64,000 nt of DNA, taken from Macrostomum lignano (taxonomy: Eukaryota). Numbering within the stretch: position 1 is the stretch's first letter; each line of letters opens with the position of its first letter. Below, piece after piece: positions 10,201-48,200 of this stretch. The stretch spans positions 59,700 to 123,699 of the forward strand of contig NIVC01003038.1 in NCBI GenBank assembly GCA_002269645.1, written 5' to 3'. The notes below the pieces were generated by a model that had not been told where the DNA came from, made no database searches, and saw only the letters and a list, made by a program, of their open reading frames with translations. The position numbers and the translations under genes are program-made.

Positions 10201-12369
10201 GTGTGGTGGCACATAGATAAGTCACAAATCTGGACAAAACTAAGTTGCACTGGATGGGTGAAATTTTGAGGTTGGGCATGTATGTCTAACAGTGCAAGCT
10301 TTTATAGGTTAAGGCTAATATCAATAAGCTTGGTAGTCAGCCTCCGGTTGGCTTTAGGCCATTGCAAAGTTGGCTAATTTAAATGTATGATATACATTCA
10401 TTACACATGGCAAAGTTCTGTTGAATTGACTGATTAGATAAGATAAGCATTTTGACTTGTCATTGTGTCTAGGTAAAAGTTCTTTATAATGGCTTTAAGA
10501 AATCAGACAGAAATAAGTCTCATTTATATGGCCTTTGGGTGTAGCCTAGCTAATGCATTTATTTTTCATTAAATGAATTTTCAATATATAAAGAATAGTT
10601 CAATTTAACAAAATATATTACATTTTTAACATATTTATATAGTATATGATCGTTATTTATATGGTTAGTCTTAAAGCAAGATTTTTTTTCAATTTTTCAA
10701 CACTTGGTAATTCTACAATTAAATTGCAAAAAGTAAGCATTTTTTGGAAACTCTAGAAACTGACTTTAAGTAATTAGAAACTTATGGTTTACTTTGGGAA
10801 CCCTCTGTTCTTAGTGTTCTTATAGAAAGCATGCAAATTATAATAATGCTTTTGTTGCAAGCATTGAAACATTTACATAAAATTACTGTTTAGCATTTCA
10901 ATTTGACAATTAAAACACTTTTTAACTCTTTTAATAAACATTACTAATGATAAATTGTATTTTATTATCAAACAAAGAAAAAAATTTAGTTAGCCCAAGT
11001 ACGCTACTGCCAGTAGACAAGTAGGAATTTATTGGAAAAGATCTAATCTAATACTCTATAAACACACACAGAGACGCTGAGGACGCCGTGCGCGGCCGGG
11101 ACACTTACAATTTCGACGGCTACAGCCTTCGAGTCGAGTTTCCTAGAAGCGCCGGCGGCCGAGGCGGCGGCGGCTACGGTCGCGATTTTGGCGGCCGCGG
11201 CGGCGGCGGCGGCAGAGGGCCGTCACGAAGGGGCGAATTTCGAGTCGTGGTGTCCGGCCTACCGCCGTCCGGCTCCTGGCAGGATCTCAAAGACCACATG
11301 CGCGAGGCCGGCGAAGTCGGCTTTGCTGACGTGCGCGGCAGCGTCGGCTTTGTTGAATTCATGCGCTACGAGGATATGAAGCGGGCCATCAGGAAGCTGG
11401 ACGGTACCAAGTTCAAGTCGCACGAGGTTGGCTTAACTCCTGCCTTTGTCTCTGCCTTGCCATGTCTTCTTCGTGTTTGTTGTATTTATATATATTTATT
11501 TATTCATTTATATTGCTCTTCAGGCACCGCTTCATTCAGCTCTTTAGGGCACACCTTCGTTTAGTCTTTCAGGACCTCTTGTCATTCCCTCATTCAGCTT
11601 TTCAGAGCGCTCTTGTCACTCCCTCATTCAGCTTTTCAAAGCGCTCTTGTCACTCCCTCATTCAGCTTTTCAGAGCGCTCTTGTCACTCCCTCATTCAGC
11701 TTTTCAGAGCGCTCTTGGTCACTCCCTCATTCAGCTTTTCAGAGCGCTCATGTCATTCCCTCATTCAGCTTTTCGGAGCGCTCTTGTCACTACCTTATTC
11801 AGCTTTTCAGAGCGCTCATGTCATTCCCTCATTCAGCTTTTCGGAGCGCTCTTGTCATTCCCTCATTCAGCTTTTCAGAGCACTCTTGTCATTCCCTCAT
11901 TAAGCTCTTAAGGACATCCGTGTCACTCTTCTCTTTGTCACTCTCTCTTTGATATTCTTGATATTCTATTTGATTCTCTTTGATACACAGTTTTATTGTG
12001 TATCAGCTCTTCAGGGCATTGGCGCCCACAAAATCTACTAAATGTACTCACAGTCCTTTAATTCAATGCGCCTGTACTTCATATTAAATTAAGATGATGA
12101 TTAGTTTATTAAATTCGTCTCCTCCTCCCTTTCTCTCCCCTTAGGGCGAGACGTCGCACATTCGCGTCAAGGAGGACCGAGGTGACGGCGCCCGTTCCGT
12201 CTCGCGCAGCCGCAGCCGCAGCCGGGGCCGGCGCAGTCCGAGCCGCAGTCGAAGCCGCGACAGTCGCAGTCGCAGCCGGAGCCGCTCTCCGCCTCGAAGG
12301 CGCAGCTCGCCGACCTATTCGCCGATGCGCGAGCGGAGCCGCAGCCGAAGCCGCTCCTACAGCGATTGA
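4271..12369 (+). CDS. SRSF1: Serine/arginine-rich splicing factor 1 (ASF/SF2): RRM1, Gly linker, pseudo-RRM2, RS domain; 246 aa
   Basis: Exons 4271-4431 ([30 protein letters not shown]...[12 protein letters not shown]), 11072-11426 ([25 protein letters not shown]...[22 protein letters not shown]...KSHE) and 12145-12369 ([11 protein letters not shown]...RS repeats, TGA). GT-AG junctions are in phase, 741 nt total. The SWQDLKD motif is diagnostic of the SRSF1 family. Confidence 0.95.
6301..6360 (-). ncRNA. Minimal type I hammerhead ribozyme of the Penelope terminal repeat
   Basis: Minus strand reads AATAAAATC-CTGACGA-T-GCA-CCATGGCA-TGC-GAAACGCGTT-GAAGTTGTTA. It has the CUGANGA and GAAA cores, stem II GCA/UGC, palindromic stem III ACGCGU, a GUU cleavage triplet, and flanks that pair as stem I. 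Confidence 0.75.
6642..7690 (-). pseudogene. Penelope RT C-terminal half plus GIY-YIG endonuclease (truncated ORF)
   Basis: ORF 6642..7823. The first about 42 aa are read through the inverted terminal copy; genuine RT sequence begins at [11 protein letters not shown]. Confidence 0.9.
8765..8848. repeat. 21-bp tandem repeat, 4 copies
   Basis: GGAACTAAGTTGCAGTTAGGA starting at 8765, 8786, 8807 and 8828. Confidence 0.9.
11576..11905. repeat. 34-bp minisatellite in SRSF1 intron 2
   Basis: CTCTTGTCA(C/T)TCCCTCATTCAGCTTTTCAGAGCG, about 9-10 copies. Confidence 0.9.
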
Positions 12370-13774: not shown

Positions 13775-16700
13775 ATGTCTGCTGGCTGCATTGAAGCCAA
13801 ATACAAGCCTATTGGCCTGGATCAGCTGTCTGGTGAATACCTCTAATTAACTGTTACTTTGTCTCTATAGGGGCTTTTGATAGTGCTGTTTTCAAATTTA
13901 AGCTACAACCCAACTTGATGTAGCTTAATTCCAAGCACTAGCATACATGCGCAACCTCCAAAATTCGGTCGGCCGTGCGACTTAGTTTTAACGAAAATGC
14001 GACGTAGTTTTTGGCCAAAAATGCGACTTACATGTAAAAGAAACCCTCAAGCAAAATTAACGCAACTTGGTTAAACGGCAGGAGTAACTATGACTGTCTT
14101 TTTAAGCCAAAAAGCCTCGTCATCTACTTAGTACTACTTTGGTATTTATTTGGGTGGGCATTTTTGCGACTTACCTAGGTTGGCCGCCAAATCGGTCGGC
14201 CGACTCAGTCGACTTGCGCATGTATAAGCACCAAGACATAGGGAATGTAGGGTTTTAGGATAGGGAGATTTTTCATCACACTTGATTTTATCAACTCCAA
14301 CTTTAATACTTCGGGTGTGTCATAAGTAATGTCACTGCAGGCTTCTGTCTAAAATATGTAGGCACATGGACTTGTGGGTAGTGTAGCTGCAAAGTATACT
14401 TAGTGAAGCAATACGACCAGTGCATTTGAGACGTGCATAGGTTGTTTATGGCCCAAGCTGTCGCAAGAATACGCCAAGCAGATTTAGCAAGTGCAACGCG
14501 ATGAAAAATCGTCTATGCAGCGAACAAAAATCACCATGAATCTCGACAAGACGCCTGCATCAAGCAGATCCGCAAGGTGTTCAGCAGGCGGGGCTTGAAT
14601 GACATCCTAAACTGCCTGGTTGCTGAGGATGAAAGCTGGCTCCACCTGGATGGCAAGGGCAGCAAGGCAGACAATCGCTGCTGGCTGGGAGCTGGGGACT
14701 CCAGGGCGACTGTGACCAGGAAGTCCATCTCGGACAAGAAGATCATGCTGCTGGTAGCCTTCACGCCAAACAAACGAGTCTCCATCTGCACAACTCCACC
14801 GAACACCAAAGTCGATGGCCAGTATTTTATCGACTTTATCCGGCACACTGGAGACCTCTGGCGCAATCTCCGGTCAAATCCATGTCACCTGGACGAGGTT
14901 CTGTGGCAGATGGACACCGCACGGCCGCACACCTGTAAGGCTTTTTTGAATTTTCTGCCTGCATGGCGAGTGAATATGCTCTGACAGAGTCCCTACAGCC
15001 CGGACTTCAACTTTTGCAAGAGATTCCTGTTCAAATGGCTGAAGGCTGAATTTTCCAAGAAGAGTTTCGCAAACCATGAAGAGGTCAAACAGGCCGCGTT
15101 GCACTGGTTATGGCAGTTGGAGGAAAAACACCTGCAGGCTGAGGTGGACAAGCTGTATGAGCACTGCCAGAGGGTGATTGATATTGGGGGACTCTATGTT
15201 GTTGAGTGGTACAGTTTTGTTCATCTGCGATTGCAAGTTCGTCTGTTTTCACATCAGTGACATTACTTATGACACACCCGAAGTAGAAGCATAAATACCT
15301 ATCTATTTAAATGAAATTTAAAATTGAAAACTAGTTCATCTAAAACCCATTTAGAATAATATTATAAGATCCTTTCAAAACCAACTAATTTATCAGCCAA
15401 AATATTAAATTATAGTTTATTACTTATTCCCTAATTTTACTAGTTAAAAAAACAAGTGCTCTTTTTCCAGAATTTTTTTTAAATAAACTATTCTTGGTGA
15501 CTGCTTTGTAGGGGATTGACAGATGGAGGTTGCCTCACCACTAAAATATTTTTAGCAGTTTTGTCCTTTTGGGCATCCTTTAAGTGCCTGGAAAAGTTTC
15601 AGAAAATTGGAAGCAATTTGTCAACCTAATTACTTGAAGAAGTCCGAATTGTGCCTGGTCCCGCTGTAGCCGGTTTTGCATTCAAGAGGTTTAGATTTTA
15701 ATTTCGGAGAGAAGTACACGTATTCTCAACAACATTGAGCAGTCTCCACCTTTGAGAGTGCGCCGTAAATTCTAGCCCATGGTATTGAGTTTGAAGTGAC
15801 GGATTTGGAAGAGCGGAGGGCGAAGATTAGATGGATTGAAGCTTCCCCCGATTTTCATTGTTTTTTAAAGCATTTTTAATATATCAAAATGGTTGGCCCG
15901 GTGATAGACGCTGGTCGAAGGACACTGATCACTGGGATAAAGAGTGGCGACTTTTCAATGTTGCTGAGTATACTTTTTCAGCGATTTTGCTGGACTTGTG
16001 GTCAGTCCTTGCTGAAGCACAATTCTTAAACTACCAAATAAAAATTGGTTGATATGTACTATAATGAAGTTTCAAATATACAAATAATGTGAAACTGCAG
16101 TCCACGCTAATTGATAAAAAAAACAAATTTAATCTTGTAACGATCAAAAGTCGAAACCAGATAGTTCCATCGATACTTAAGCTGGAACTTATGACTTAGT
16201 CCTAAGTGTGTTTTATAAACATTTATGGCTGGCTAACTTCGATCGTAGCTAAGATCGAGCTTATGCGTTTAGGGAAGATTGACGGCCAGAGACGATTGAC
16301 ATAATAAACCTTGACTAGTCATTACGACCTAAAAATAGAAAGCAACCACTCGATCACGCTCGGCAGCACCGGCGACATCTTGTTCTCCACCTTCAAATCC
16401 ATCTTCGAGGAAGGACTAAATGACTTAGGACAGCTCTCGATGTGTCTAAAAGTTAGGATCGAAGTTGGGGGCTTCAGCCATAGAATGCTATCTTTATAAA
16501 ACACTTTGACCATAAGTTCAATCTTATCTTACTCTAGGTCGCACCTAGGTTGGTTCCCAGCTAAGACTCGCATTTATGTATAAGATAACTGCGAGTCTAA
16601 CTGCGGGCCTGCGGCCCTCGGGGGCTTAAATAAATACATCCCTCAACTCTATGTGTCATCTCACTTAAATTCATGCGCTAAAAATACAACCCGCTAATTC

Positions 16701-19700
16701 ATATAACAGCTAGTACAAATTCTCCGGGTTGTATGTAATTACAACCTGCAAATTGGCCATAGACATCAATACTGTATTGGGGGTGTGGGGGCGAAGCCCC
16801 CACATTCTATACCATAGACATATTTTATAAAGACAGACAGAGGACAGATAAATAGCTGGAAAGCCTCACTATAACAATCGTCCTTGAATCGTCCAATTGG
16901 CAAAAACACCCTGGCAAAGTTTCTGCATGAGATGTGCACTGAAACCGAGATTTCTGGCCACAAGACTAATTATAGTCTACGCGCTACGTGTGCTACACGT
17001 CTTTACCAAGCTGGCGTTGAAGAACAGCAAATAATGGAACGAACAGGCCACCGAAGTTTGGCTGGAGTCCGCACGTACAAGCGGACGTCCGACATTCAAA
17101 TAGCCAATTCCTGCGCTGTATTGGACGCTAAAATACTACGCGAGGCTGAGACAGACGCAGCTAGCGTCCGCGGTGAGCGTCAGCTGAATTTCGGTTTTAA
17201 TAACTGTTCAGTCATCATCAAAAATTGATTACAAGCGTGCCATGAACCCAACTGTTAGTAACTAAAACTGATTAACCTTAAGCCGAAACTAACCAACTAA
17301 CCTAAGTAAACTAAGCTACTTTGCTGCCTACTAATAAGACCCGGAAATTTTCGTTTTCCAGTTATATTCATAATCTCGTTTTCTGTCATCCAGAATGAAA
17401 TATAAAATATACAACCCGAAAAATACAAATTCTAGCTCGGTGTTTTGTGTCTATGGTAAAAATACATCCCGGAAAAGAGCTTCGCAGGGATTTAACTTTA
17501 TAAAACATGTCACCCCTAAGTTCATGCGTAAGTTGGCACTTAAGATCAAACTTAGCTTTATAAACACCCCCAGACAGGGTTTGATTTCTCTTAAGGTACA
17601 CATGTATCAGCCTTTTCTCGTCAGAATTTTTGTCTATGGCGAAACCCCATTTAACGCTATATGCATTCTCTAGTAGATACTACTAAACGTACTACATGGC
17701 GAAACGAAAAACACGTTCGTTACCGACCTCCAGGTCATTTCTAAGAAAATCCAGTTCAGCAGATCCAGCTGTTTGATTTTTCCATGCCTTCGAAAGCTTG
17801 TATGAGATAAAACTATATAACATCACAAATTTTACATTTCATCCACATTACATATGTAACTTGTACCCGTGCATGGTTGCAGTGAGCCTGTTGACAGATT
17901 GCTCACACGACAGCAAGCTGATAAAGTGCGGCTACATCTGTCGCAGAGAGAAGATAGCGGTATGCGTTGCTGGCGGCTCATCCACAGGTGCAGCTGCAGG
18001 CCCTGATCAGGAATTTGATGACAACTGTGAGTGACAGGTATACTGCTATATATACTTAGGTCCTCTAAAATTTGCATAATCTCAAATGCTTACGAGTATC
18101 TAACTTAAAATTCCAGTCGTTCTCTACTATGCGGTACTTCGTGCCAAGCAATTGTTTCTATTCCACAATGAGGACAGCACTCAGTGCAAGGAGGTCATCA
18201 TCTTAAGCCAGTTTGAGTAAGAGCTGGGTCGTTTTAATTTTTTTGAGAGAGCTTTCTGCAAATTAATCAACTGCAGTCCTTGACTTAGCAAACCTTGGAA
18301 CCGTCCAGCAGTACATATAACTCTGGATTGTCAGATTATTTGTTGACAACGAAATTTATAAATTATCTAATTATCTAGCATGAGGTAAAATGAGTTTTCG
18401 GGTTGGCAGGCGTCAGTGTTTGATGCACCCGATATAAAAGTCTTCAGCGGTTGTCATCTGAGTTTCATTACACTGATGCGCGTGGCGTCTACTTACAACT
18501 GAAAGTGGAAGCAGTCGTGACCTGAGAGGGTCACCTGCCAATCCGACTGTGCCGATTTGCGATTGGTGTAAAAAATCGGTTTCGAGCTGGGGATAGCGCC
18601 TCCAGGTTGCCTGGAGCATGATACCAACGATACCAATAGCGCAGGTGGGAACCGGGATCCAGTTTAGGACCCTTAACTTACTTGACTTTGCTGCAGGGTG
18701 GTTCAATGACGCAAGATGGAAGTTGACCGCCTGAAGGGCCCGCATATAGATTAAGTAGGGACGATGGAGGCTCGTCTGGTACATTAGCCCGGAGGAACCG
18801 GATGAGCCGTGGGGATATTCTCATCGAATGACGTGTTAATCCCGAGGTGGTGGAGCTGGGCCCGGCTGAAGGCCAAACGCTAGCCCAGTTCAGGTCCATG
18901 AGGAACCAGATGATTCAGAGTCACAGCTTTAGCAGGGGCATTAGCCAGCTCATTCCCTTAAATCCACTGCAGCTTCCAATGGTCCCTACCGAGTACCGCA
19001 TGTCGAGTAGCTCTGCGGTGCAGAGTTTAATGGCGAGGACTTGGTTTAGTTTACCCAATACGATGTTGGCTGACTATTTGGACCAATCGATACCAACAAT
19101 TAAGCTCAAAGGAGTTCCAGTTGTCATGTATACGAGCTAGAGCCTTAATTGTAAGGAGCAGATTGAGCGTTGATTTGTTTCGGACTCAGAGGGCTTTTCC
19201 CCAGTGGGATAGTAGAGAAACAGGCATCTTATTTCAACTTACATGTAATTCTCTCTGAGGCTGAGAATGGAAGTCTCCCTGAGGCTGAGTGAGACTGCTA
19301 GAGATTCCTAAGAGATTTGGGACTAAAGCTGACGCCGCCCTTCAGAGCAATTGAAGTACTTTACCCCTAAAAGGCTTTCAACAAACCCCAGATACCTACC
19401 GGACGCGTCCATTGGACCGCCCAGCTGGCCGGAAGGCTTCAAGAAGTCGGCCACGCTGAGATCCGCAGTCCAAGACACCTCCGGCGGCAGCAACAGCAGC
19501 GGCAGCGGAGGCCAGGAGTTGCAGCATCATCTGGGCTGGTCGAGGCACAGCAATTGGCAGGCGCACATCCCGGACCAGCTGACCAAAGCGCGGAATGATA
19601 GAGCTGCGGCGCTGGCCGAAACTCGCAATCTGCTCATCGCCGCTCAGCAACTGCTCACGGCTCGTTCAGCCGCCACTTCCGCCGTCGCTTTCGAAGAGCT

Positions 19701-22700
19701 CCAGCTGCCTAGCAAGACGGAGAAACCGAAGTCGAGCATGCTCAATTCGCTAATAAACAAATTCCAACGGGTTCGGACGTTCAGCCAGGAACGAAACGAA
19801 GGCGGCGGCTGTGGCCCAGCCCAGTCGACGTCCCAGCAGCAAACGGCGGGAGCCGATCAGGACGACGAAGAGATGATCTACACGACGCTGGACGATTCGC
19901 TGGCCAATGTCGAGAAAGACAACTCGTCGAACCGGGCTATCGATGGGGACGATAAAGAGCAGACCTACGAGACGCCAGACGATCCTTCTCTCCCAACGCC
20001 GCCGCCGCCTCCTGCTGTTCCAGCAAAGCCACTGAAGCCACAGAAGGGCCTCGTGACGCCTGAGATGCTCAGCAGCCGGCAGCTCCGGCCGACTCCGCCG
20101 ATACCGGCGCCGCGAGGCCGATCCGACGATAGCGGCGACACCAATGGCAAACCCGAAATTACCGAGGGCGGAGAAGCACTGCGTCAGCGGAAGCCGTCCT
20201 TGAGCCCGACGCCCACACCGCGGCTCCCCGCTACCATTGAGGGCTCCCTCAAGGACCAGCTGCTTGCTGGCGCCGCTGTGGACGCCAGCGTGAGCTACTT
20301 TTACCAGGCGTTCAACTGCAAACCGCTGCTGCAGGATGCTGTCAGGCAAGTCTGCGGTGTTTTGATTTCAGACAGAAATTTCACGAGTTCATTGGGATAT
20401 TAGTCCCACTTTCTTCTTTCATTAGTTTAACCAAGTACCAGACAATGAGCCTCAATCGGGCACACAGTAAGTTATCGCGTCTCACTCTCTCGCGCTAAAG
20501 CACGAGCTATGCAGGTTCGCTTCCGTTCGCTGTCACATTTATTTGGGGCTCGTGCGATTCACACCAGCGAGGGGCCAACCCCCAACCCAAAGACACAGAG
20601 TACATGCAGGGCTGATGTACACTCACAAGTGAGCGTGGGCCTGTAGGCTTCTAAAAAACTATTTTTAGACACAAAAATTCATGCTAACTACGAGCTACAT
20701 TTGATCACTGCAATTAATCCATTGTAAATGAAAGGCTTGCTAGCGAGTAAGGCTTGAGGGGTCGCTTTCACAAGCTCAAAATTTCACATCGTCGAAAAGC
20801 CTTCTTGATTAAATTCATAATCTCGAAAACCAATAATAAAACATAAACTCGGAAGCGATTAGCCATGAAAATTTCCATTACTGTTTCATATTGGCTTGAA
20901 AAAACCGATTTGAATCTTATGATTTTTCGAGCTTGTGACATTTCAAGCTTGTAGAGGATTTCCTCTTTTGACGATGTGAAACTCCCTGCAGCGTTAGGTG
21001 GGTTGACTCAGCCAATGAGCGTAAAGCTTCGGAAAATTGCTGGGTTATTTATAGCACGGAGCAAAGCAAAGTACGAGACATTCGTGAGCTCCATTATGCT
21101 TCCAGCCAATAGGAGCTAAGCTATCGAGGGGAATCCCAGGTTATTTATAGAAATGCGCCAGGCTCCAGAAGTTCCATTCTTCTAAGCCTAGCCTGTAAGG
21201 ACTTCAACCGTATTTATTCATTTTACCCGCATCTAGCGAGTTGGAGGCGGCTCCCGCCGGAAGCTTCGTGGTGCACGGCGGCTCCAGCGGCCGCGGCGGC
21301 GGGCAACTTCGTCTGCTGACTCTGCTAGTTAGGTCTGCTGACCCGGTGCATTCCGTCTGCCGGTACACTATCAAGGAGACAACAACCAACGGAGTTCAGA
21401 TTGCCGGCTCCCTGGGCTCGGCCAGTCACGCAAGCGTCAACCAGCTGCTGTACTATTATCACATTCACGACCTGCCCATCTGCAAAGATCACCCGGAAAC
21501 CGTGATTAAGCTGGTTCGTCCGCTGCACTTGTCCCGGTGAGTGAGGATATTAATATCCATATCCATATATATACCCATATCTAAACGAGCTCTTATCTCC
21601 CTAAACATGATTCGTATTTCTCTCTCACACAGGCAAACGAGTTTTCTAAGCGCGTCAATCTGGTGCCTCGGTGACAAGCCCCTGTGTCTAAGGTGAGTGA
21701 GAACTACAAATTCATTGGCTATACCTTGCTCTGAGTTACTCACATCACCCCTGCTCAAATTATTGCAGTCTGCTGACAGGGGCTCAGGAAGGCACATTTG
21801 CTCTGCTTGTGGATCAGCAGACCAAGCAGCTATCATTATACGCAACGGCGACAGACAAGCAGATGACGGTGAAAATGCGCATTAACACCGATGGCAAGGT
21901 ACAAGTGAGACGCTTGGGGGTTACTCAACTTAAACCTAATAAGCTTATTCTAGCAGCCACCCCACTCCCAACCGCCTATTCTAGCACCCACCTCACTCCC
22001 TCCTCCCCATTCTAGCACCCACCTCACTCCCTGCTGCCCATTCTAGCACCCACCTCACTCCCTGCTGCCCATTGTAGCACCCACCTCATTCCCTGCTGCC
22101 CATTCTAGCACCCACCTCACTCCCTGCTGCCCATTCTAGCACCCACCTCACTCCCTGCTGCCCATTCTAGCACCCACCTCACTCCCTGCTGCCCATTCTA
22201 GCACCCACCTCACTCCCTGCTGCCCATTCTAGCACCCACCTCACTCCCTGCTGCCCATTCTAGCACCCACCTCACTCCCTGCTGCCCATTCTAGCACCCA
22301 CCTCACTCCCTGCTGCCCATTCTAGCAAGCCACCTCACTTCTGCCCAATTCATAATTCATCACAAAGCTACTCCACTTCCTTATGCAATGGCCTAATCGA
22401 ACGGTATTTCAAAATTTCAGCAGCAAAAGTTCTGGGTATCTGATTCGGAAAAATTTGACTCACTTGAGAAATTTCTGATGCATTATCACCGGTATAGTCT
22501 CAGTGTGATTTCTACCGACTCCGGCGGCAAGGAGGTGCCATTGCGGCTAACAATGCCCTGTCAGCTATCAGAGTGAGCTGATAGTGAGCTTCTATGTACT
22601 TTAAATAGCGAATGTCAGGTAAACGTTTCCTCTTCAATTTGCAATTCTCCAGAAAGTTTCAAACCAACCTGAGTCAGTACCTGACTGATCACGTGACTGA

Positions 22701-23429
22701 AGAGTGCACCGAGAGCGTCGTAAATGGCGGCGGTGGCTCTCTGGTGGTGAGCATCAAACGACTTGGTAGCGCCTGCGTCCGCACGGAGACTCTGCTGGAT
22801 GGCGAGGATAGCCAGATGAAGCTGACAGTAGCGGGCGGCTGGGCGGCTGGGGTGCTGGTTGAGGAGGCGAGAGTTCGCGGCTACCAGGTGAGAGAGTGAC
22901 TCGTTGACCTAACTGTAACACTGGAGTACGCCGACATGGCATTTAAAAAAACTATTTGAACTATTTTACTATTCAGTAGCAAATAAAGGAGGTGGCAGCT
23001 ATTTTCTGCTTAGGAAGGCCAATTAAATTAGCAGATAGATTGTTACCTACAGAAAGAATCACGTGACACAATTTGTTATCAGTGCAAGGGCAGAATGTAC
23101 ATTGGTCAGTGCAGCGGATATGTACATGGCAGCTTAACCCCCCCCCCCAGCCAGGACGCGATCGATGGGGGCAATAGAATGGGAGAGCAATAAAGCGACA
23201 AGGCCAGCAGTGTGCGTGGAATGGCGGAAACGATAGGCAGACAAATACGCCAATATGAATTCGGTAGGGAATCATACTACTGAGTTGACAGTAGCTTATT
23301 AGCATATGCTCTGCGTTTCAGTGGATCTACAGAATCGAAGGCCGGCCAGAGATTGAATTTGAAAGCATGGACAAGCTGCTCATGTACGCCAGCCAGCACC
23401 CGGACGGACTTCTGCTAAAACGAGGTTGA
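13775..23429 (+). CDS. PH, Pro-rich/Tyr-motif and triple SH2-like adaptor protein, paralogue A (about 746 aa)
   Basis: Exons 13775-13832 (first exon less certain), 17883-18026, 18117-18216, 19392-20345 (GC donor), 21237-21536, 21633-21692, 21769-21898, 22421-22572, 22653-22887 and 23322-23429 splice into one open frame of 2241 nt. PH strands: LIKCGYICR, YYAVLRAKQLFLFHNED, HLG..SNWQ. SH2 signatures: APAGSFVVH..SVNQLLYYYH..IKLVRP; IWCLG..QEGTFAL..FDSLEKFLMHYH; GSLVV..FESMDKLLMY..LLLKRG*. Confidence 0.8.
13946..14222. mobile_element. Tc1/mariner-type MITE
   Basis: CATGCGCAA and TTGCGCATG termini, each flanked by TA (13944-45, 14223-24). Subterminal repeated TCGGTCGGCCG and GCGACTT motifs. Confidence 0.6.
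14309..15283 (+). mobile_element. Mariner (DD34D) DNA transposon, internally deleted and defective
   Basis: Perfect 29-bp TIRs CTTCGGGTGTGTCATAAGTAATGTCACTG at 14309-14337 and 15255-15283, with TA TSD. Transposase catalytic fragment AEDESW ... MDTARPH ... QSPYSPDFNFC, with a premature TGA at 14982-14984. The N-terminal HTH region is missing. Confidence 0.93.
16875..17228 (+). mobile_element. Crypton-type tyrosine recombinase C-terminal fragment (DUF3504-like)
   Basis: RPIGKNTLAKFLHEMC..TNYSLRATCATRLYQAGVEEQQIMERTGHRSLAGVRTYKR contains the H-x-x-R box (here Y-S-L-R), TGH and the catalytic Tyr. It is 5'-truncated and intronic. Confidence 0.8.
21975..22335. repeat. 31-bp minisatellite (intronic)
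   Basis: TAGCACCCACCTCACTCCCTGCTGCCCATTC, about 11 copies. Confidence 0.92.
23052..23290 (+). repeat. Dispersed ~240-bp repeat family, copy 1 (copy 2 at about 25493-25700; copy 3 inverted at about 59425-59670)
   Basis: Shared AGAATCACGTGACACAATTTGTTATCAGTGCA...ATGTACATTGGTCAG...ATGTACA...GCTTAACC block and a distal ATCATACTACTGA. The reverse complement (GTGTCACGTGATTCT) lies near 59660. Confidence 0.7.
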
Positions 23430-23764
23430 CCGGGCGTGATGTCGTGTGGATTTCTCTGGTTCAACAATCGGATTCAGTTAATTTGTTATTGGATTATCCT
23501 CGACAATGCGATTCACTGTGTCTCTTACCCAGCCTTCATTCCGATTTTATTCAATTGATAATCCAGAAAAATTTAATACGTTTTTTCGATAACAATTATT
23601 ATATGATTTTCTATTTTCTCATCGTTATCAACAATAAAACTCAGATTTTTATTCGACAGCATCTGATTTCAGTTGCACTTTACTGCATAGCAAATTTCAG
23701 ATTTTTTACTTTTTTGTACATATTGCTTTGTGGTTGCTCTGTGCGTGTTACAGTGACTGGAAAG

Positions 23765-24495
23765 TGTCTGAGCAGTGTTTGAGCAGTGTTTGAGTAGTGT
23801 TTGAGCCGTCTGGGCAATGTCTGAGCAGTGTTTGAGCAGTGTTTGAGCAGTGTCTGAGCAGTGTTTGAGCAGTGTTTGAGCAGTGTCTGAGCAGTGTTTG
23901 AGCAGTGTTTGAGCAGTGTTTGAGCAGTGTTTGAGCAGTGTTTGAGCAGTGTTTGAGCAGTGTTTGAGCAGTGTGTCTGAGCAATGTTTGAGCAGTGTCT
24001 GAGTAGTGTCTGAGCAGTGTCTGAGCAGTGTCTGAACAGTGTCTGAGTAGTGTCTGAGCAGTATCTGAGCAGTGTCTAAGCAGTGTCTGAGCAGTATCTG
24101 AGTAGTGTCTGAGTAGTGTCTGAGTAGTATCTGAGCAGTGTCTGAGCAGTATCTGAGTAGTGTCTGAGCAGTGTCTGAGCAGTATCTGAGTAGTGTCTGA
24201 GTAGTGTCTGAGTATTGTCTGAGTAGTGTCTGAGCAGCGTATGAGCAGTGTCTGAGCAGTGTCTGAGCAGTGTTTGAGCAGTGTTTGAGCAGTGTTTGAG
24301 CAGTGTCTGAGCAGTGTCTAAGCAGTGTCTGAGCAGTATCTGAGTAGTGTCTGAGTAGTGTCTTAGTATTGTCTGAGTATTGTCTGAGCAGTGTCTGAGC
24401 AGTGCCTGAGCAGTATCTGAGTAGTGTCTGAGTAGTGTCTTAGTATTGTCTGAGTATTGTCTGAGCAGTGTCTGAGCAGTGTCTGAGCAGTGTCT
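23765..24495. repeat. 11-bp minisatellite between the two SH2 paralogues
   Basis: GAG(C/T)AGTGT(C/T)T, about 65 copies. Confidence 0.95.
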
Positions 24496-24977
24496 GTGCA
24501 GCATATTAGCATTTAATCAGTTACCAAACTGTGCCGTTATCTGCAGTGGACTGCAACATCCGTATAAGCAGTTAAATCTGATTCTAAGTTACTGAAAGTC
24601 ATGCTGCGGATTGCATCAGCTGTTCGAAGCCCTTGCTCAGGATCAGAGCGAAATGAAAGTAGCAGGTTTCCTTTTATCAGGCTGCTGAAATGCCGCCAAC
24701 GTACACGCACGCACATTCGTTAGCATTTTGCTAGCAAAGCGCGCAATAAAGTTTTTCGAGAACAGAATTTTTTACTAGTCAATTTTCTTTAGAAAATAGA
24801 TAAAACAACAACTTAAAGACGATAAGATAAGGAATTGTCTTTGAAAACTGGAGACATTTTCCGTAACAGGGCTTGCAGTGAATCATTGAGAGACCTGCTC
24901 AAAAGCTTTCACGACTCGACACGAAGTAGCATATAGGAGACGTTGGGGTTTTCCGTACGTGCTCGCAAGAACAGAAG

Positions 24978-36781
<11,804 letters not shown>

Positions 36782-41136: not shown

Positions 41137-42745
41137 TCAATCAGTGGTGGACTCCAGTCGACTGGGACAGAGCAGCTGCCGGAGGTTCCGCCCTTTGGTG
41201 TAGGAGGGCAGCACCAGGGCCTCGCAGTGCCGGGCCACGCGATCCTTCACCGCGGCCACGAGGGCGTCCGACCTCGCACAATGGGGCAGGATCAGCGGGA
41301 TGGCCGGGTTATGCAGCGTGCCGGCAAGCTCGTTGACGCCGTGCGGGGCTCGAGTCTTTAACACCTCGATGAGCTTGGCGTCGTAGCGCTGACGCCGCTC
41401 GTTCGCTCTGGGTCCCGTGCCGTCACGTGACCAGATGCCGGTGAAGCCGAAGTCCGCCAGACTGTGACCATCACTGGTGAAGTGGCGGGCCACCGGAGTG
41501 TAACGGGCGTGCCGGATGTCGCCGATGTGCGCCAGCATGCGGCCGCGGATGCTGTTCGCAGTCTCACCGATGTAGACAGTGTGGTCGCACCGGCGGCAGA
41601 ACACGGCGTAGACGGCGTTGGTGGCGTTGCAGTCGATCCACTGACTGATGATGAGCTGGACTGTCGTGGCTGCTGATCCGGGGCAGACGGAGGTGAACCT
41701 GGTGTGTGTCCGGCAGCACCTGCACAGCCGGGTCGGGTTGCATTCCGAGCCGAATTCCCACCGTCTCGTCGGGTAGAAGCCCAGCTCCGTCAGCATCTCG
41801 TACTTAATCGTGCGCAGGAACCGCCGATTGTAGCCCTGGTGCTGCACCAGACTTGAAAACAGCCCAGTGCACGCTGCGTCGAAATCGGCCATCCGGGAGC
41901 ACCGTCGGGCGTATCTGAGGAGCTGGGACTTCACTACGCCCCGGAACGTCCACTTCGGGTGGAAAGAGTCACGGTGAATGAGCGTTCGGCTGTCGGTCAG
42001 CTTGAAATACACCTTGGTTGCCAGGCGCTTAACGTCGCCCTCGCGGACCCAGAAGACGGTGGTGTCCAAAAAGGCCACCTCCGTGCTGCTGTAGTTGAGT
42101 TGCAGCCTAATATTCGGGTCAAGGTCATCAAGGAGTCCGTGGAAGCGGATCAGTTCGTCTTCCGTCCCGCGCCACACGCCGAAGATATCATCAATGTAAC
42201 GGAGCCACAGGGCGGGTTTCTGCGGGCTGACCGCCAGGCCGTGCTGCTCCCAGTAGCCCATGTAGATGTTGCTGTAGCTGGGCGCAAACGACTTTCCCAT
42301 GGCCGTGCCTTTGACCTGCAGGAAGTAGCTGCCATTAAATCCGAAGTCGTTGCGCTCCAGATTCGGCTTGAGCAGACTGAGGAGGCTGGCATCCGGGCGC
42401 TGACTGTCCGGGTGCTCCCTGAATGCTCTCCGCACGCACTCGAGGCCGGCTTCCGTCGGAATGTTGGTGTACAGGCTGGCAACGTCCATGGTGAACAGGA
42501 AGGTTTCCTCAGACGTCGGACAGGTGATCCCGCGGATGGCGGCCTGGAAGTGGTCGGTGTCCCTGATGAAGCTGGGCAGCCTGATGACGATGGGCTGCCG
42601 GAAACTGTCGATGAAGCGGCCGCTGGCGTAGGACTCGCTGTCCACATCAGACACGATGGGCCGGCCCGGTGGAATGTCGCCGAGCGGGCACGATTCGACA
42701 GGCTTGTGGATTTCGGCAGAATTCGGCAGAACTTTCGGGGACAGG
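41137..42745 (-). CDS. Penelope (Neptune-like) reverse transcriptase plus GIY-YIG endonuclease, partial
   Basis: PPGRPIVS, FTMDVASLYTNIP, GTAMGKSFAPSYSNIYM, WLRYIDDIFGVW, VYFKLTD..HP; Cys-rich linker CNPTRLCRCC; then NAVYAVFCRRC..YIGETANSIRGRMLAH. A single-base frameshift near 42710 breaks the LPKIHK motif. Confidence 0.92.
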
Positions 42746-43384
42746 GAAAGTGGCGTGGAGGGGAACGGGAGCAGGTGGACTTGGACAGTGAAAGTGAAAG
42801 AGGGACAATACGCTCGTACTGAGGAATGAAGAAGCGTAAAAGCGCGAGAAAAACAGAAAGTTTAGGATGGAAAGAAGAGAATGAGAGGAGAGTGAGAGAG
42901 AGAGAGAGGGAGAGCTGAGAGGAGTGTGATAAGGTGGCAGTGGAGGGTGAGACAAGCGAGTGGGCATGGAGATTTAGGTCTGTCTGAATGCCCAATTATT
43001 GCATCAGACGCATCAGTGGGCAGGAGGTACTGAGTGCCCAAGCACCCGTGAGAGAGAGAGAGTTTGATCTGTGCAGTAGGCTGTAGGAACAAATTGAACA
43101 CTGAAAGCACCCAGCGAAATGAATTCTGAACACCGTCTGGTCCGGTGCGTCCGTACCAGCACTCAGTGCGCCACCCACCCCATTCAGCTGACAAATAAGG
43201 CAGCAAAAATGTCATTCGAAAAATATTTTCAATGGCTGACTCATGCTGCACCCTGACGTCAAGGAGTTATGGAATGAAACTACCATCCTTCATGGGATTC
43301 GAAAATCTAGTAGCATCAGAGGAATTGACATCAATAATCCATGAAATAACAAGCATCTGAAATAAAAACTTGTTTTTTCTTTAC

Positions 43385-44058
43385 TCCATGCAGGAATGCT
43401 GGACTCCAGGCATCTGGAATGGAAGCTGCTTGCTCCATGGAATGCTGGACTCCAGGCATCTGGAATGGAAGCTGCTTGCTCCATGGAATGCTGGACTCCA
43501 GGCATCTGGAATGGAAGCTGCTTGCTCCATGGAATGCTGGACTCCAGGCATCTGGAATGGAAGCTGCTTGCTCCATGGAATGCTGGACTCCAGGCATCTG
43601 GAATGGAAGCTGCTTGCTCCATGGAATGCTGGACTCCAGGCATCTGGAATGGAAGCTGCTTGCTCCATGGAATGCTGGACTCCAGGCATCTGGAATGGAA
43701 GCTGCTTACTCCATGGAATGCTGGACTCCAGGCATCTGGAATGGAAGCTGCTTGCTCCATGGAATGCTGGACTCCAGGCATCTGGAATGGAAGCTGCTTA
43801 CTCCATGGAATGCTGGACTCCAGGCATCTGGAATGGAAGCTGCTTACTCCATGGAATGCTGGACTCCAGGCATCTGGAATGGAAGCTGCTTGCTCCATGG
43901 AATGCTGGACTCCAGGCATCTGGAATGGAAGCTGCTTGCTCCATGGAATGCTGGACTCCAGGCATCTGGAATGGAAGCTGCTTACTCCATGGAATGCTGG
44001 ACTCCAGGCATCTGGAATGGAAGCTGCTTACTCCATGGAATGCTGGACTCCAGGCATC
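43385..44058. repeat. 46-bp minisatellite, about 14.5 near-identical copies
   Basis: CCATGGAATGCTGGACTCCAGGCATCTGGAATGGAAGCTGCTT(G/A)CT with period 46 (43435, 43481, ...). This is the source of all the overlapping ORFs at 43290-44122. Confidence 0.97.
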
Positions 44059-45258
44059 TCCTGGAACAGCATGTACCTATAATTTGACGCGTATGGCTTT
44101 CCTCAATAATAGCAATCCATGACGTTCGTTCATCCCTGCATATCTATCGTATATATAATAGTTTTCTACTTTGGCTACTGTTATACTCTCGTTATAGCAG
44201 CAAAATTCAACGCGAATACGGGCAATTCAAGAGTGTTGCGTTCCCTTCACTCTTCCAGCATCCCGAAACTTCCTGCATCATTAAAGTTGGTTTTGATTGA
44301 AGGCAGCTCGTTCGGTGCCGTCGTGGATGAAGAACGGTCCGATCGGCAGCAAGAGGCAGGCGGTCCAGCGCGCGCATCCTTCAATAAAAATTTCTGGCAT
44401 AAACGCTTAACACCTGCAGGTCACGGTCAGTAAAGTTCACCGAACCAGGAAGTTCACCGCATATGGCAGTTTTATGCACATTGTTGCCTTTACTGCGTTC
44501 CCAATGCGTTCCCTGTCTTTTATCATTCTTGTTTTCTTGGATCCTCTCTCTTCGCGGATTTGTCCTCAGTTGACCTCTTCGTTAGCTGCAGTAGTGGACA
44601 GGGACAGCTTCTGTCACCAATTTATTGCCGCTGATTTTGGAAGCAAATAATTGCAGAAAGCAAGCAAATTTATTGTTTCTAAAAATTCTAAACGTGTACA
44701 GTACTCTCTCCGCTGGCCATCATGCACTGCACGTGAGCCAAAACATTCATTTGTGAGCGCACAGAATCGTACGGGAAGCGTATTTGACATCATGAAAAGC
44801 ATTAAATATGAAAGTTAAGCTTTATTTCTTATTATGTGAGTGTATATTTGTATGATTTTAATATATTATATACTTAGCAACACTTTAACACCCCACGCAC
44901 CCCACGCACCCCACTCGCCATGCCAAACGGCCCAAAAGTTTTGCCTGGTCTCAGCTGCCCCAAGAGTTTATCAACCGGCTGGTGATTAGGTTGCCAGGGC
45001 ATTAATGACATTGTATGACTTTTGTGCCGCGTGACAGCGTCAGTTAGGGGGGGGGGAGCATAGATAGAAATTCTAGTGCTTCAGCATAATTTTTTAAGAA
45101 AACGGCAACGGCAACGCGGAGCAGAATAATTTCAACATTCGGGTAATAAATAAATAGCAACTAGCAATAGAAATATATTATTCAATTATTCGAACACTAT
45201 AATGTCACAGATTTGTACCGAAATTTATCCAACATAGCCAACAGCAAGGTAGCGTGTT

Positions 45259-48200
45259 TCAAACTGTCAGGGTACCGTTAATGTACTTGGCCCATTCGAT
45301 AATGTTCCTGGTGCAGACGACGCACCTGGCTATGTGGCCAGTGCCGCTCGCGTAGGTGAAGGTCTCCGATTTCAGCACGGGTTCCTCTGTCTCCGTGGCG
45401 CGCAGCCACAGGGTGTGAAAGTCTTTGAAGTAGCCGCAGCTGCCCTCGCCTCGGCATTCGATGAACATGTTCTTCTTGAACCTTAGGCAGCTGCCTGGCG
45501 AGGACAGGGGCTGCACCGAATCTCCAGGGGTTTGGCGGCCGAACTGCGGTGGGGGCGACGGGTTGCTGCTTGTAGATGTCTGATGGTGCTTGTGGATGTC
45601 TGAGTGTGCTTGTGGATGTCTGAGTGTGCTTGTAGATGTCTGATGGTGCTTGTGGATGTCTGAGTGTGCTTTTGGATGTCTGAGTGTGCTTGTAGATGTC
45701 TGATGGTGCTTGTAGATGTCTGATGGTGCTTGTGGATGTCTGAGTGTGCTTGTGGATGTCTGATGGTGCTTGTGGATGTCTGAGTGTGCTTGTGGATGTC
45801 TGAATGTGCTTGTGGATGTCTGAGTGTGCTTGTGGATGTCTGAATGTGCTTGTGGATGTCTGAGTGTGCTTGTGGATGTCTGAGTGTGCTTTTGGATGTC
45901 TGAGTGTGCTTGTAGATGTCTGATGGTGCTTGTGGATGTCTGAGTGTGCTTGTGGATGTCTGAATGTGCTTGTGGATGGCTGAGTGTGCTTGTGGATGTC
46001 TGAGTGTGCTTGTGGATGTCTAAGTGTGCTTGTAGATGTCTGATGGTGCTTGTGGATGTCTGAGTGTGCTTGTAGATGTCTGAGTGTGCTTGTGGATGTC
46101 TGATGGTGCTTTTGGATGTCTGAGTGTGCTTGTGGATGTCTGAGTGTGCTTGTAGATGTCTGAGTGTGCTTGTGGATGGCTGAGTGTGCTTATTAAGCGT
46201 AAATATAGTCATTGACAGTTTGATGCCAATAGATACTCACTGTTAAGAGGCTGTGACCATCCCAGAGCGATCTCCATCCCGAGGGACAATTCGGCCTAGT
46301 ATTGGTGTAGTTGTGAAATGCGTACACCTGCAAATAGATGGAGAGTGGTGGTAACGAATGAATCTTTTTTTCAGTTTCTTAAAATTGATTTAAATACAGC
46401 GTATATTTTCTCAGTGTACATTGCCTCAGTGCGTAGATGCTAATAAAGTAAACAATAGTTGCTACTAACCTTGCTGGGCGAATAGCACACGGCGCAACGA
46501 CTGATGTACTGGGACATGTTCCTGTAGGTGTCCAAGTCCATTGCCATCTCCATGGTAACGGAGACATCCGTGCTCAGCCAGTAGGACAGGCTGTTCCTCT
46601 GGGCGTTGTGGCAGTTCTTGGAGTTCTCGCACAGGCTGAACGGCATTACGTTGAAGCGTCGAAGGCAGGAGCCGGGACTGCCGAGGTCGTAGACTTTGCT
46701 GTACGAGTTCGAGAACACCGACATGAACGAGTAGCCGGCCCAAAGGCGCTGCGTGCCGCTGGGACAACCGGGAACGTCGGTCCGCTGACTGTGCAACGCA
46801 AACATGTCGCCCCGCAGGTTGCGACCCTCCGGACCGCGGTCACCGTCGCTGCCCGGCTCGCCTTTGGAACCGTTGTCGCCGCCGTCGCCGTGATCACCCT
46901 GCTGGCCTTTTGGCCCCGGCGGGCCCTTGTCGCCAATGGGCCCCGCCTCGCCCAGGTCGCCTTTTGGCCCCGGTGGTCCTCGCGGACCCCTCCCGCCGGC
47001 GAGGCCGTCGCGACCCTCTCGACCCGGCGCTCCCAGGGTGCCTTTCTCGCCAACCTCGCCAACCTGGCCGACGCTGCCGGTCACGGAGTCGCCCCGTTCA
47101 CCTTTCTCACCGTCGCTGCCCCGGTCGCCGACTTGGCCGCTCTGGCCGCGTGAGCCCAATCTGCCCTTGTCGCCTTTAAACCCGGCGACGCCTTTGGCTC
47201 CGCGTTCGCCCAGCTCGCCTTTCGCGCCAACTCGACCGTCCGGACCGACCGCGCCCTTGCGACCCTGCTTGCCCAGCGGCCCAGACGAGCCTTCAACGCC
47301 TGTGACGCCTTTGTCGCCTTCCAGGCCTACGTTGCCCTTTTCTCCGGCCTGGCCCTTGTCGCCTTGCCGGCCCTTGATAGCGTCCTGACCCTTCAAAGCA
47401 TCTTCACCGGCCTTGCCTTTGACACCTTTAGGTCCTGTGTCGCCCAGCTCGCCTTTATCGCCTTTCTGCCCGTCGGTTCCGGTTTCGCCTTTGAGCCCGA
47501 CGTCGCCATCGCGACCCTTCTGGCCCCGGTCGCCCAAATCGCCCTTGTCACCGACCGAGCCCTTGCTGCCGGTGGCGCCTTTTACGTACACAGTGTTCAC
47601 GTCACCGAGCTGGCCGCGGTCGCCCTTGTCCCCGGTGTCTCCGCTGTCTCCAGTGAAGCCTTTGTCGCCCACTGACCCTGTCGAGCCATTGTCGCCGCTA
47701 ACGCCTTTCTGACCGCGCTCGCTAGCCTCGCCAATCTGGCCTTTCAAACCTTTAGCGCCTTGGTTGCCAAACGTGCCTTTCCGACCGACGTTGCCGTCGC
47801 TGCCGTTGACTCCTGGCTCACCGACAGGGCCGCGGTCGCCTACCGGCCCCCTGGCACCCGTGTCACCCGGTGGACCCTGAGGACCGATGTCTCCGAGGTC
47901 GTCGCTGCGTCCGCCAGCCCCGCCGCGCATGCCTTTGGCGCCTTTCTCGCCCAACGGGCCCTTGGGTCCTCTGGGTCCCTTGTCGCCCGGTTGGCCATTC
48001 GGTCCCTTGTCGCCTAGGAAACCTTTGTAGCCTTGGTTACCGCGGTCACCCTGTGCAATATTTTTAATAATAACTGTAGTTTATATCCTTAAACTCCATT
48101 CTCTGTTCATGTGAATTGTGAACCAACCCCTTCTCTCCTGCTCCTATTTTCTTTTGATGAACGCTTAGCGCTCTGCCCCGTCCGTCATCTCTCTTTTTCT

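Follow-up and report, generated by a model that had tools for sequence, protein, structure and literature searches.

Tandem genes of the flatworm Macrostomum lignano encode triple SH2-like arrays in which five of six domains appear to lack the FLVR arginine

The SH2 domain is the textbook reader of phosphotyrosine. Loss of the arginine found at position beta-B5, within the FLVR motif, is rare, and the human domains without it number three (PMC7530234). The Arg-less human SH2 domains keep and use the fold without Arg-phosphotyrosine recognition; that of TYK2, with His at beta-B5, binds a Glu residue of the receptor (PMC7530234). In Spt6, the Arg-less member of a tandem SH2 pair is tightly packed on its neighbor and its canonical pocket is unused (PMC3507883, PMC7530234). 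The C-terminal SH2 domain of p120RasGAP ("FLVR-unique") binds phosphotyrosine without using the FLVR Arg, through the basic residues of beta-D4/beta-D6 as well as the BC loop (PMC7530234). Arg-less SH2 domains as such (TYK2, RIN2, SH2D5, the C-terminal SH2 domain of Spt6) are therefore already known. Here we describe two neighboring genes, A and B, in a 64,000-nucleotide stretch of the Macrostomum lignano genome (positions 59,700 to 123,699 of contig NIVC01003038.1, assembly GCA_002269645.1, forward strand; hereafter the window). Each encodes a PH-like region, a linker and three SH2-like domains. What appears to be new is this combination of modules, the fact that the databases searched hold it for Macrostomum only, and a graded loss of the Arg under purifying selection. 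We know of no curated family with three SH2 domains per polypeptide.

The substitutions themselves have human counterparts. The His of the first domain of A, and of the third domain of a further paralogue (C, see below), occupies beta-B5 in TYK2 and RIN2 as well, and the Trp of the third domain of B does so in SH2D5. In the human proteins, however, the change concerns a single SH2 domain set in FERM-SH2-kinase, Vps9/RA and PTB-SH2 contexts, whereas five of six domains are affected in the flatworm pair; no orthology to TYK2, RIN2 or SH2D5 was detected among 1.84 billion representative proteins. The tandem SH2 module of Spt6 is like gene B in placing an Arg-bearing domain beside an Arg-less one. 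Yet Spt6 has two SH2 domains and is a highly conserved, pan-eukaryotic elongation factor of the nucleus, whereas the flatworm family has three, is lineage-restricted and is adaptor-like. The p120RasGAP domain is pertinent to the first domain of A, which has an Arg near beta-D4, and to the second, which has Lys and Arg on strand beta-D; it retains its FLVR Arg, salt-bridged to an Asp, whereas the flatworm domains have theirs replaced. The best profile and Foldseek matches to A and B are the tandem SH2 domains of SHP2, Syk/ZAP-70, PLC-gamma and p85. In these proteins two Arg-bearing SH2 domains are coupled to a part that is catalytic or binds a catalytic subunit, whereas the SH2-like domains of A and B number three and are joined to no enzyme. 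The products of the two genes (746 and 635 aa) contain neither a catalytic nor an iSH2 region, and no homologue beyond M. lignano was found at E <= 1e-3, which leaves both outside the SHP, Syk/ZAP-70, PLC-gamma, p85 and RasGAP families.

Genes A (13775-23429) and B (24978-36781) are tandem paralogues on the plus strand, with ten exons each and the same architecture. Domain A-SH2-1 (A1; 20290-21536, end of exon 4 and exon 5) carries the hexamer GSFVVH at 21259-21276, with His at beta-B5. A-SH2-2 (A2; 21633-22572, exons 6-8) has Leu at this position (GTFALL, 21791-21808), and A-SH2-3 (A3; 22653-23429, exons 9-10) has Ser at the presumed beta-B5 (GSLVVS, 22735-22752). In the downstream gene, B-SH2-1 (B1; 31120-31591, end of exon 4 and exon 5) has Ala (GTFLLA, 31323-31340), and B-SH2-3 (B3; 35910-36781, exons 9-10) Trp at the presumed beta-B5 (GAFVVW, 36025-36042). 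The Arg remains in B-SH2-2 (B2; 35069-35816, exons 6-8; GTYSLR, 35228-35245), together with a Lys at beta-D4. Wherever the domains were aligned with SH2 domains of solved structure (Src, SHP2, PLC-gamma1, BMX, tensin-2 and SOCS4), the FLVR Arg column is taken by the residue following G-x-[FYL]-x-[VLA], and the A1 His is aligned to the Arg of Src and of tensin-2. All six hexamers lie on the plus strand where the original prediction implied, and its central claim, that five of the six domains lack the beta-B5 Arg, is confirmed by these alignments; the assignment is secure for positions 1 and 2 of the arrays and less so for A3 and B3. Reading the arrays as "pseudo-SH2" modules is plausible on this basis.

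The distribution of the Arg within the family suggests how this state arose. A phmmer search with the database counterpart of gene B (P0001, see below) against the 1.84 billion representative proteins returned M. lignano proteins only (E <= 1e-3), namely the gene A product and two further paralogues. Paralogue C (P0006), which sits within a chimeric 2139-aa model, comprises a PH-like region, proline-rich repeats and three SH2-like domains; paralogue D (P0007/P0010) is partial and has two. Both keep Arg at positions 1 and 2 (GVYMLR, GTYALR), and the third domain of C has His. Position 3 is without Arg at beta-B5 in every paralogue that has a third domain (Ser in A, Trp in B, His in C). Domain-by-domain scores group by position and not by protein, and the triple array is therefore older than the paralogue split. 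Since Arg is the rule in SH2 domains and is kept by C and D, positions 1 and 2 were presumably canonical in the ancestor, with position 3 already Arg-less. On the simplest reading, the losses in A and B would be secondary and stepwise, at position 1 in both genes and at position 2 in A alone. The arrays of A and B are about 24% identical, and the two genes share the same phase at all nine introns (1,1,2,2,2,2,0,2,0), which supports the view that they are true, old paralogues. The gene A array gave no match in a word-indexed search, despite the existing UniProt models of A, and two profile queries brought up the two B proteins alone; because known gene A models were missed, these negatives say little about family size. 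Nothing relevant came up in the literature under the locus tag, on SH2 proteins of Macrostomum or on proteins with three SH2 domains.

That the modules are SH2 homologues, as originally proposed, is borne out by profile comparisons. With a profile of all six domains, the best 60 matches in the PDB were all SH2 domains (SHP2, PLC-gamma1, Src, Vav2; best E = 8.7e-08). The same was true of the best 60 for each of two position-specific profiles to which paralogues C and D were added (E = 1.6e-3 for position 1; E = 4e-6, to PLC-gamma1, for position 2), and a profile-profile comparison with hhalign linked positions 1 and 2 with E = 3.4e-9 over 90 columns. Single domains are weak, and spliced models and profiles were required for detection. 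Against a Pfam SH2 (PF00017) cut-off of 21 bits, the second domain of D reached 30.3 bits, while A2 (17.9 bits, E = 0.0035, and 15.9 bits) and the second domain of C (18.8 bits) stayed below; neither the spliced gene B protein nor the six exon fragments gave a Pfam SH2 match. Individually, A2 matched the SH2 domain of BMX (E = 0.0066, with its Leu on the Arg column) and B2 that of SOCS4 (E = 0.17). For the third domains, MAFFT misaligned the N-terminal half and a hand alignment was substituted locally. The hhalign match between positions 3 and 2, which had covered the C-terminal half only (E = 2.4e-5), then ran from beta-B to alpha-B (E = 3.9e-4). B3 alone had no sequence match in the PDB, and A3, with an insert of about 16 residues after beta-D, is the weakest of the six. 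As judged from these profiles, SH2 homology is clear for positions 1 and 2 and weaker for position 3.

AlphaFold2 was run on the database proteins corresponding to gene B (P0001) and gene A (P0005), with an alignment of only six rows. The order alphaA-betaB-betaC-betaD-alphaB was present in A1, A2, B1 and B2 at a predicted local distance difference test score (pLDDT) of only 40-74, and loosely in B3 (27-58). B1 was the best-predicted stretch of its model (56-74), followed by B2 (58-70); A1 scored 41-55. A3 was unfolded in the model of P0005, whose beta-B region is shortened. Foldseek searches with both models gave tandem-SH2 proteins as all of the top matches (PLC-gamma, Syk, SHP2 and ZAP-70; E = 1e-7 to 1e-4), the best values for the two being 1.3e-7 and 1.6e-7. 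The C-terminal signature F-x-S-[LM]-x-x-L-[LV]-x-[HY], which had been attributed to all six domains, proved exact in A3 (FESMDKLLMY); the other five depart from it at one or two positions (HASVNQLLYY, FDSLEKFLMH, FDTLEQLVFH, YDSLEDLLGS and FDSIESLVAH).

Both genes are under purifying selection. P0001 is encoded on another contig of the same assembly (NIVC01004167.1, called L001 here) that runs collinear to the window, with 96-98% identity, and the two can be compared as two copies of one species, alleles or homeologues. Over 2193 nt of gene A coding sequence (from 17873, leaving out exon 1) there are eight synonymous and three nonsynonymous differences, a nonsynonymous to synonymous ratio (pN/pS) of 0.12 (binomial P = 9e-4 against neutrality). 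Over 1908 nt of gene B there are nine and five (pN/pS = 0.18, P = 2e-3), and the pooled P value is 5e-6. Both open reading frames (ORFs) are intact in both copies. The exons contain no gaps in A and one in B, an in-frame gap of 9 nt in the disordered linker; the introns show 1.2% mismatch of aligned bases and 160 gap columns in about 4.7 kb. Decay, for which a dN/dS near 1 had been named as the expected sign, left no trace in this within-species comparison.

The gene models were assembled manually, guided by reading frames and splice signals. Gene A consists of exons 13775-13832, 17883-18026, 18117-18216, 19392-20345, 21237-21536, 21633-21692, 21769-21898, 22421-22572, 22653-22887 and 23322-23429, and has a single terminal stop, in frame. 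The exons of gene B are 24978-25020, 25724-25831, 25935-26034, 30559-31188, 31301-31591, 35069-35134, 35206-35338, 35662-35816, 35910-36147 and 36638-36781. Position 21237 is the acceptor of gene A exon 5, and 36781 the final base of the gene B stop codon. All introns of B, and all of A except intron 4, are GT-AG. We read intron 4 of A as GC-AG, with the donor consensus CAG|GCAAGT; the two UniProt models of gene A splice it at a GT-AG pair lying 5 and 4 nt inside these sites, with loss of the residues V-S-E (…QDAVS|ELEAAP… as against …QDA|LEAAP…). Both variants are in frame, and the GC-AG reading is preferred solely because it gives the intron the same phase as in gene B. An alternative start of gene A at 17873 was dropped in favor of the upstream exon 13775-13832, which is backed by P0005.

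The region has no long ORFs of bacterial type; exons are short, and the introns are crowded with mini- and microsatellites. Most of gene B intron 5 is filled by an (AGAT)n microsatellite (31610-35024) that spans 3.4 kb in about 860 copies and causes an extreme GC skew and a spurious minus-strand ORF of 793 aa; it is seemingly much shorter in L001. Large minisatellites with repeat units of 29 bp (85 copies, 28022-30443) and 31 bp (12.6 copies, 21947-22339) occupy gene B intron 3 and gene A intron 7, respectively, and one of 11 bp (67 copies, 23763-24501) lies between the genes. The window and L001 do not agree in minisatellite copy number. Within gene B intron 3 there is, besides, a minus-strand ORF (26832-27341) with weak matches to retroviral-type aspartyl proteases (E = 7.5e-4, under the Pfam cut-off), probably a remnant of a long terminal repeat retroelement. 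In intron 1 of gene A, a plus-strand stretch at 16875-17225 matches Phage_integrase of Pfam (E = 5.8e-10); it codes for the C-terminal end of a tyrosine recombinase and is probably left from a Crypton- or DIRS-like transposon.

Database counterparts exist for both genes. Gene B corresponds to the M. lignano hypothetical protein BOX15_Mlig002108g2 (P0001, 632 aa), found with a profile of the two arrays; the two are 99% identical and agree at every splice junction, and P0001 also supplied three upstream exons that were afterwards located for gene B. The exons of gene A are matched by two M. lignano UniProt models, A0A1I8FWC5 (P0005), which supplied the first coding exon, and A0A1I8GKD5 (P0009), an annotation chimera in which exons of an SRSF1-like neighbor are fused to those of gene A. 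In UniProt these proteins already bear the name "SH2 domain-containing protein". Around residues 640-650, P0005 reads GGGGSLVRLRPHETLL, where the window (22735-22790), L001 and P0009 read GGGGSLVVSIKRLGSACVRTETLL; this deviation reflects an artefact of the model or, alternatively, a variant copy in which the beta-B/beta-C region of A3 is shortened. Exact-sequence look-ups of P0005 and P0007 found no contigs. The locus exposes an annotation gap, in that gene A is uncalled at the collinear locus of one assembly and fused to the SRSF1-like gene in one UniProt model.

Upstream of the arrays, exons 2 and 3 and the start of exon 4 encode a region (17883 to about 19700 in A; 25724 to about 30960 in B) that may be PH-like. 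GYICR, AVL...LFLF and WP motifs and a C-terminal helix with a conserved Trp are shared by the aligned N-termini of the three proteins A, B and C. In the AlphaFold2 model of P0001 (low pLDDT here), strands at residues 31-36, 51-59, 62-66, 76-79, 102-107 and 110-117 precede a helix at 125-137, and this order fits the PH fold, although Pfam PH does not match the N-terminal regions. The linkers are disordered and rich in Tyr and Pro, with PxxP runs and acidic Tyr motifs (EEMIYTTLDD and KEQTYETPDD in gene A; DNTYNEAS in gene B). Taken together, the proteins look like docking adaptors. An N-terminal PH domain and Tyr/Pro-rich docking sequence are found in the membrane-proximal scaffolds STAP1/2, SH2B/APS/Lnk and Gab/Dok/IRS, with an SH2 domain in STAP and SH2B. 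The likeness is one of description, and the STAP, SH2B, Gab, Dok and IRS proteins have one SH2 domain or none where A and B have three SH2-like ones. Neither the number of SH2-like domains, three instead of one, nor the phmmer search with P0001, which gave only M. lignano proteins, supports placing the genes in the STAP or SH2B families.

The reading towards which we lean, by a modest degree, is that A and B are functional tandem members of a Macrostomum-restricted adaptor family with three SH2-fold domains, in which phosphotyrosine reading has been lost stepwise. Their ancestor would have been a docking protein in which two SH2 domains read phosphotyrosine and the third had already degenerated. 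The gene B protein may be a membrane-proximal adaptor whose second SH2 domain, with Arg at beta-B5 and Lys at beta-D4, would be the sole remaining reader, flanked by two Arg-less SH2 folds. Gene A would encode a scaffold without a canonical reader, its inputs being the PH-like module, its own Tyr/Pro motifs and SH2-fold contacts independent of phosphotyrosine. The Arg-less domains may have been retained as structural partners or as phospho-independent peptide binders, as in Spt6 or JAK/TYK2. More tentatively, and with doubts that outweigh our confidence, the paralogues could form a Macrostomum-specific PH-linker-triple-SH2 series with two (C and D), one (B) and no (A) canonical readers, the Arg-less folds being kept under selection because they gained phospho-independent ligands or because the reader still present cannot do without them as structural partners.

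Several observations weigh against this reading. The pN/pS values are whole-gene figures built on 25 differences between two copies of one species. Gene A is absent from the genes called at the collinear L001 locus of GCA_002269645.1, and its expression is presumptive. Mean pLDDT is low in both AlphaFold2 models (44.8 for P0001, 38.9 for P0005), and the beta-B5 assignment at position 3 hangs on the hand alignment. Our suggestion that the N-terminal module is PH-like is weak: with the A/B/C profile, the PDB yields a single match, to the PKD3 PH domain (2d9z; E = 0.3). Lastly, the register of strand beta-D is ambiguous, so that compensating basic residues in the Arg-less pockets are possible.

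By the main rival explanation, the Arg-less domains still use basic residues elsewhere to recognize phosphotyrosine, phosphoserine/phosphothreonine or an acidic residue, and act as unconventional readers. Residues of the pocket beyond beta-B5 are assigned tentatively, by alignment. A1 combines the beta-B5 His with an Arg at beta-D3 or beta-D4, the register being off by one in the tensin-2 alignment; A2 has two Lys and an Arg on strand beta-D, for which three alignments give three registers, one of them (BMX/PLC-gamma1) with Lys at beta-D6. The Lys of a G-x-K motif is invariant in all position-2 domains and is aligned with a Lys of helix alphaA in SOCS4, and B3 has a net charge of +3. Precedents exist in p120RasGAP, with its use of beta-D4/beta-D6, and in the Glu-binding TYK2 domain (PMC7530234). 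In the family alignments, on the other hand, beta-D4 and beta-D6 are Cys and Ser in B1 and Gln and Thr in A2. The corresponding pairs are Arg/Thr in A1, Lys/Ser in the first domain of C and Val/Arg in that of D, and at position 2 Lys/Val in B and Lys/Arg in both C and D. B1, moreover, has a net charge of -12 (3 Lys/Arg against 15 Asp/Glu) and A3 one of -5. We consider unconventional reading of this kind somewhat unlikely, at about one chance in four in our own estimation. The earlier contention that A is fully blind to phosphotyrosine goes further than these data, since basic beta-D residues remain in A1 and A2 and the C-terminal SH2 domain of p120RasGAP binds phosphotyrosine by way of such residues.

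Three further explanations are less likely than unconventional reading. Loss of the Arg could mark relaxed constraint, gene A and the Arg-less domains being relics on the way to becoming pseudogenes. The missing gene call at the collinear locus and the shortened beta-B region of A3 in P0005 would fit, as would the fast evolution implied by 24% identity between neighbors and by the lack of relatives beyond M. lignano at E <= 1e-3. However, two haplotypes both carry unbroken ten-exon ORFs whose splice sites match the consensus and whose phases are conserved; no frameshifting indel has entered the exons, against 160 gap columns in the introns; A3 is complete in P0009 and L001; and gene A departs from neutrality as described. 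Gene A as a pseudogene is rejected on its intact ORF and its pN/pS, and we regard the wider relic explanation as improbable. Hardly more favored, and if anything a shade less, is the idea that the degenerate SH2 folds join the PH-like domain in binding membranes or lipids. Recruitment to the membrane is suggested by a PH-like module at the N-terminus, and B2, B3 and the third domain of C are mildly basic; but the PH assignment is itself weak, B1, A3 and the second domains of C (-3) and D (-2) are acidic, and A1 and A2 are near neutral. Binding of phosphate or anionic lipid by B1 and A3 seems unlikely from their composition, and the lipid-binding role once suggested for the Arg-less domains is weakened to that extent. 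Least credible by far is that the modules are not SH2 domains and resemble them by chance. Most single-sequence Pfam and PDB searches did end at or under threshold, but the best hits of the profiles are SH2 only, with E values down to 9e-8, the second domain of D exceeds the Pfam cut-off, and Foldseek gives tandem-SH2 proteins only.

Other genes and repeats surround the pair. The SRSF1-like splicing-factor gene lies upstream of A (4271-4432 and 11070-11564, plus strand; RRM, E = 3.4e-12). Retroelement ORFs on the minus strand at 6642-7823 and 41137-42654 have reverse-transcriptase matches; the first also matches a GIY-YIG nuclease, a combination we take to be typical of Penelope-like elements, and its flank is present as an inverted duplicate (6192-6602 and 7080-8090). 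A type IV collagen gene occupies 46440-51301 or beyond on the minus strand; its long exons code for Gly-X-Y sequence (Pfam Collagen, E = 5e-50), and a C4 (NC1) domain stands at the C-terminus (C4, E = 1.9e-33). Between the second retroelement and the collagen gene lie long tandem arrays (43290-44143 and 45259-46212) with open frames on both strands; in translation they repeat with units of about 46 aa and 20 aa, or 138 bp and 60 bp. Rfam detected no RNA family in the window.

The interest of the pair lies in what it brings together. One small gene family in one animal has Arg-bearing and Arg-less versions of the same positions within the same architecture, apparently all under selection. Such a family would offer a compact comparative system in which to ask what role the SH2 fold plays after phosphotyrosine reading has ended, and whether a degenerate neighbor supports a working domain. 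Gene knock-down is routinely carried out in M. lignano, a laboratory flatworm, and these questions are therefore testable.

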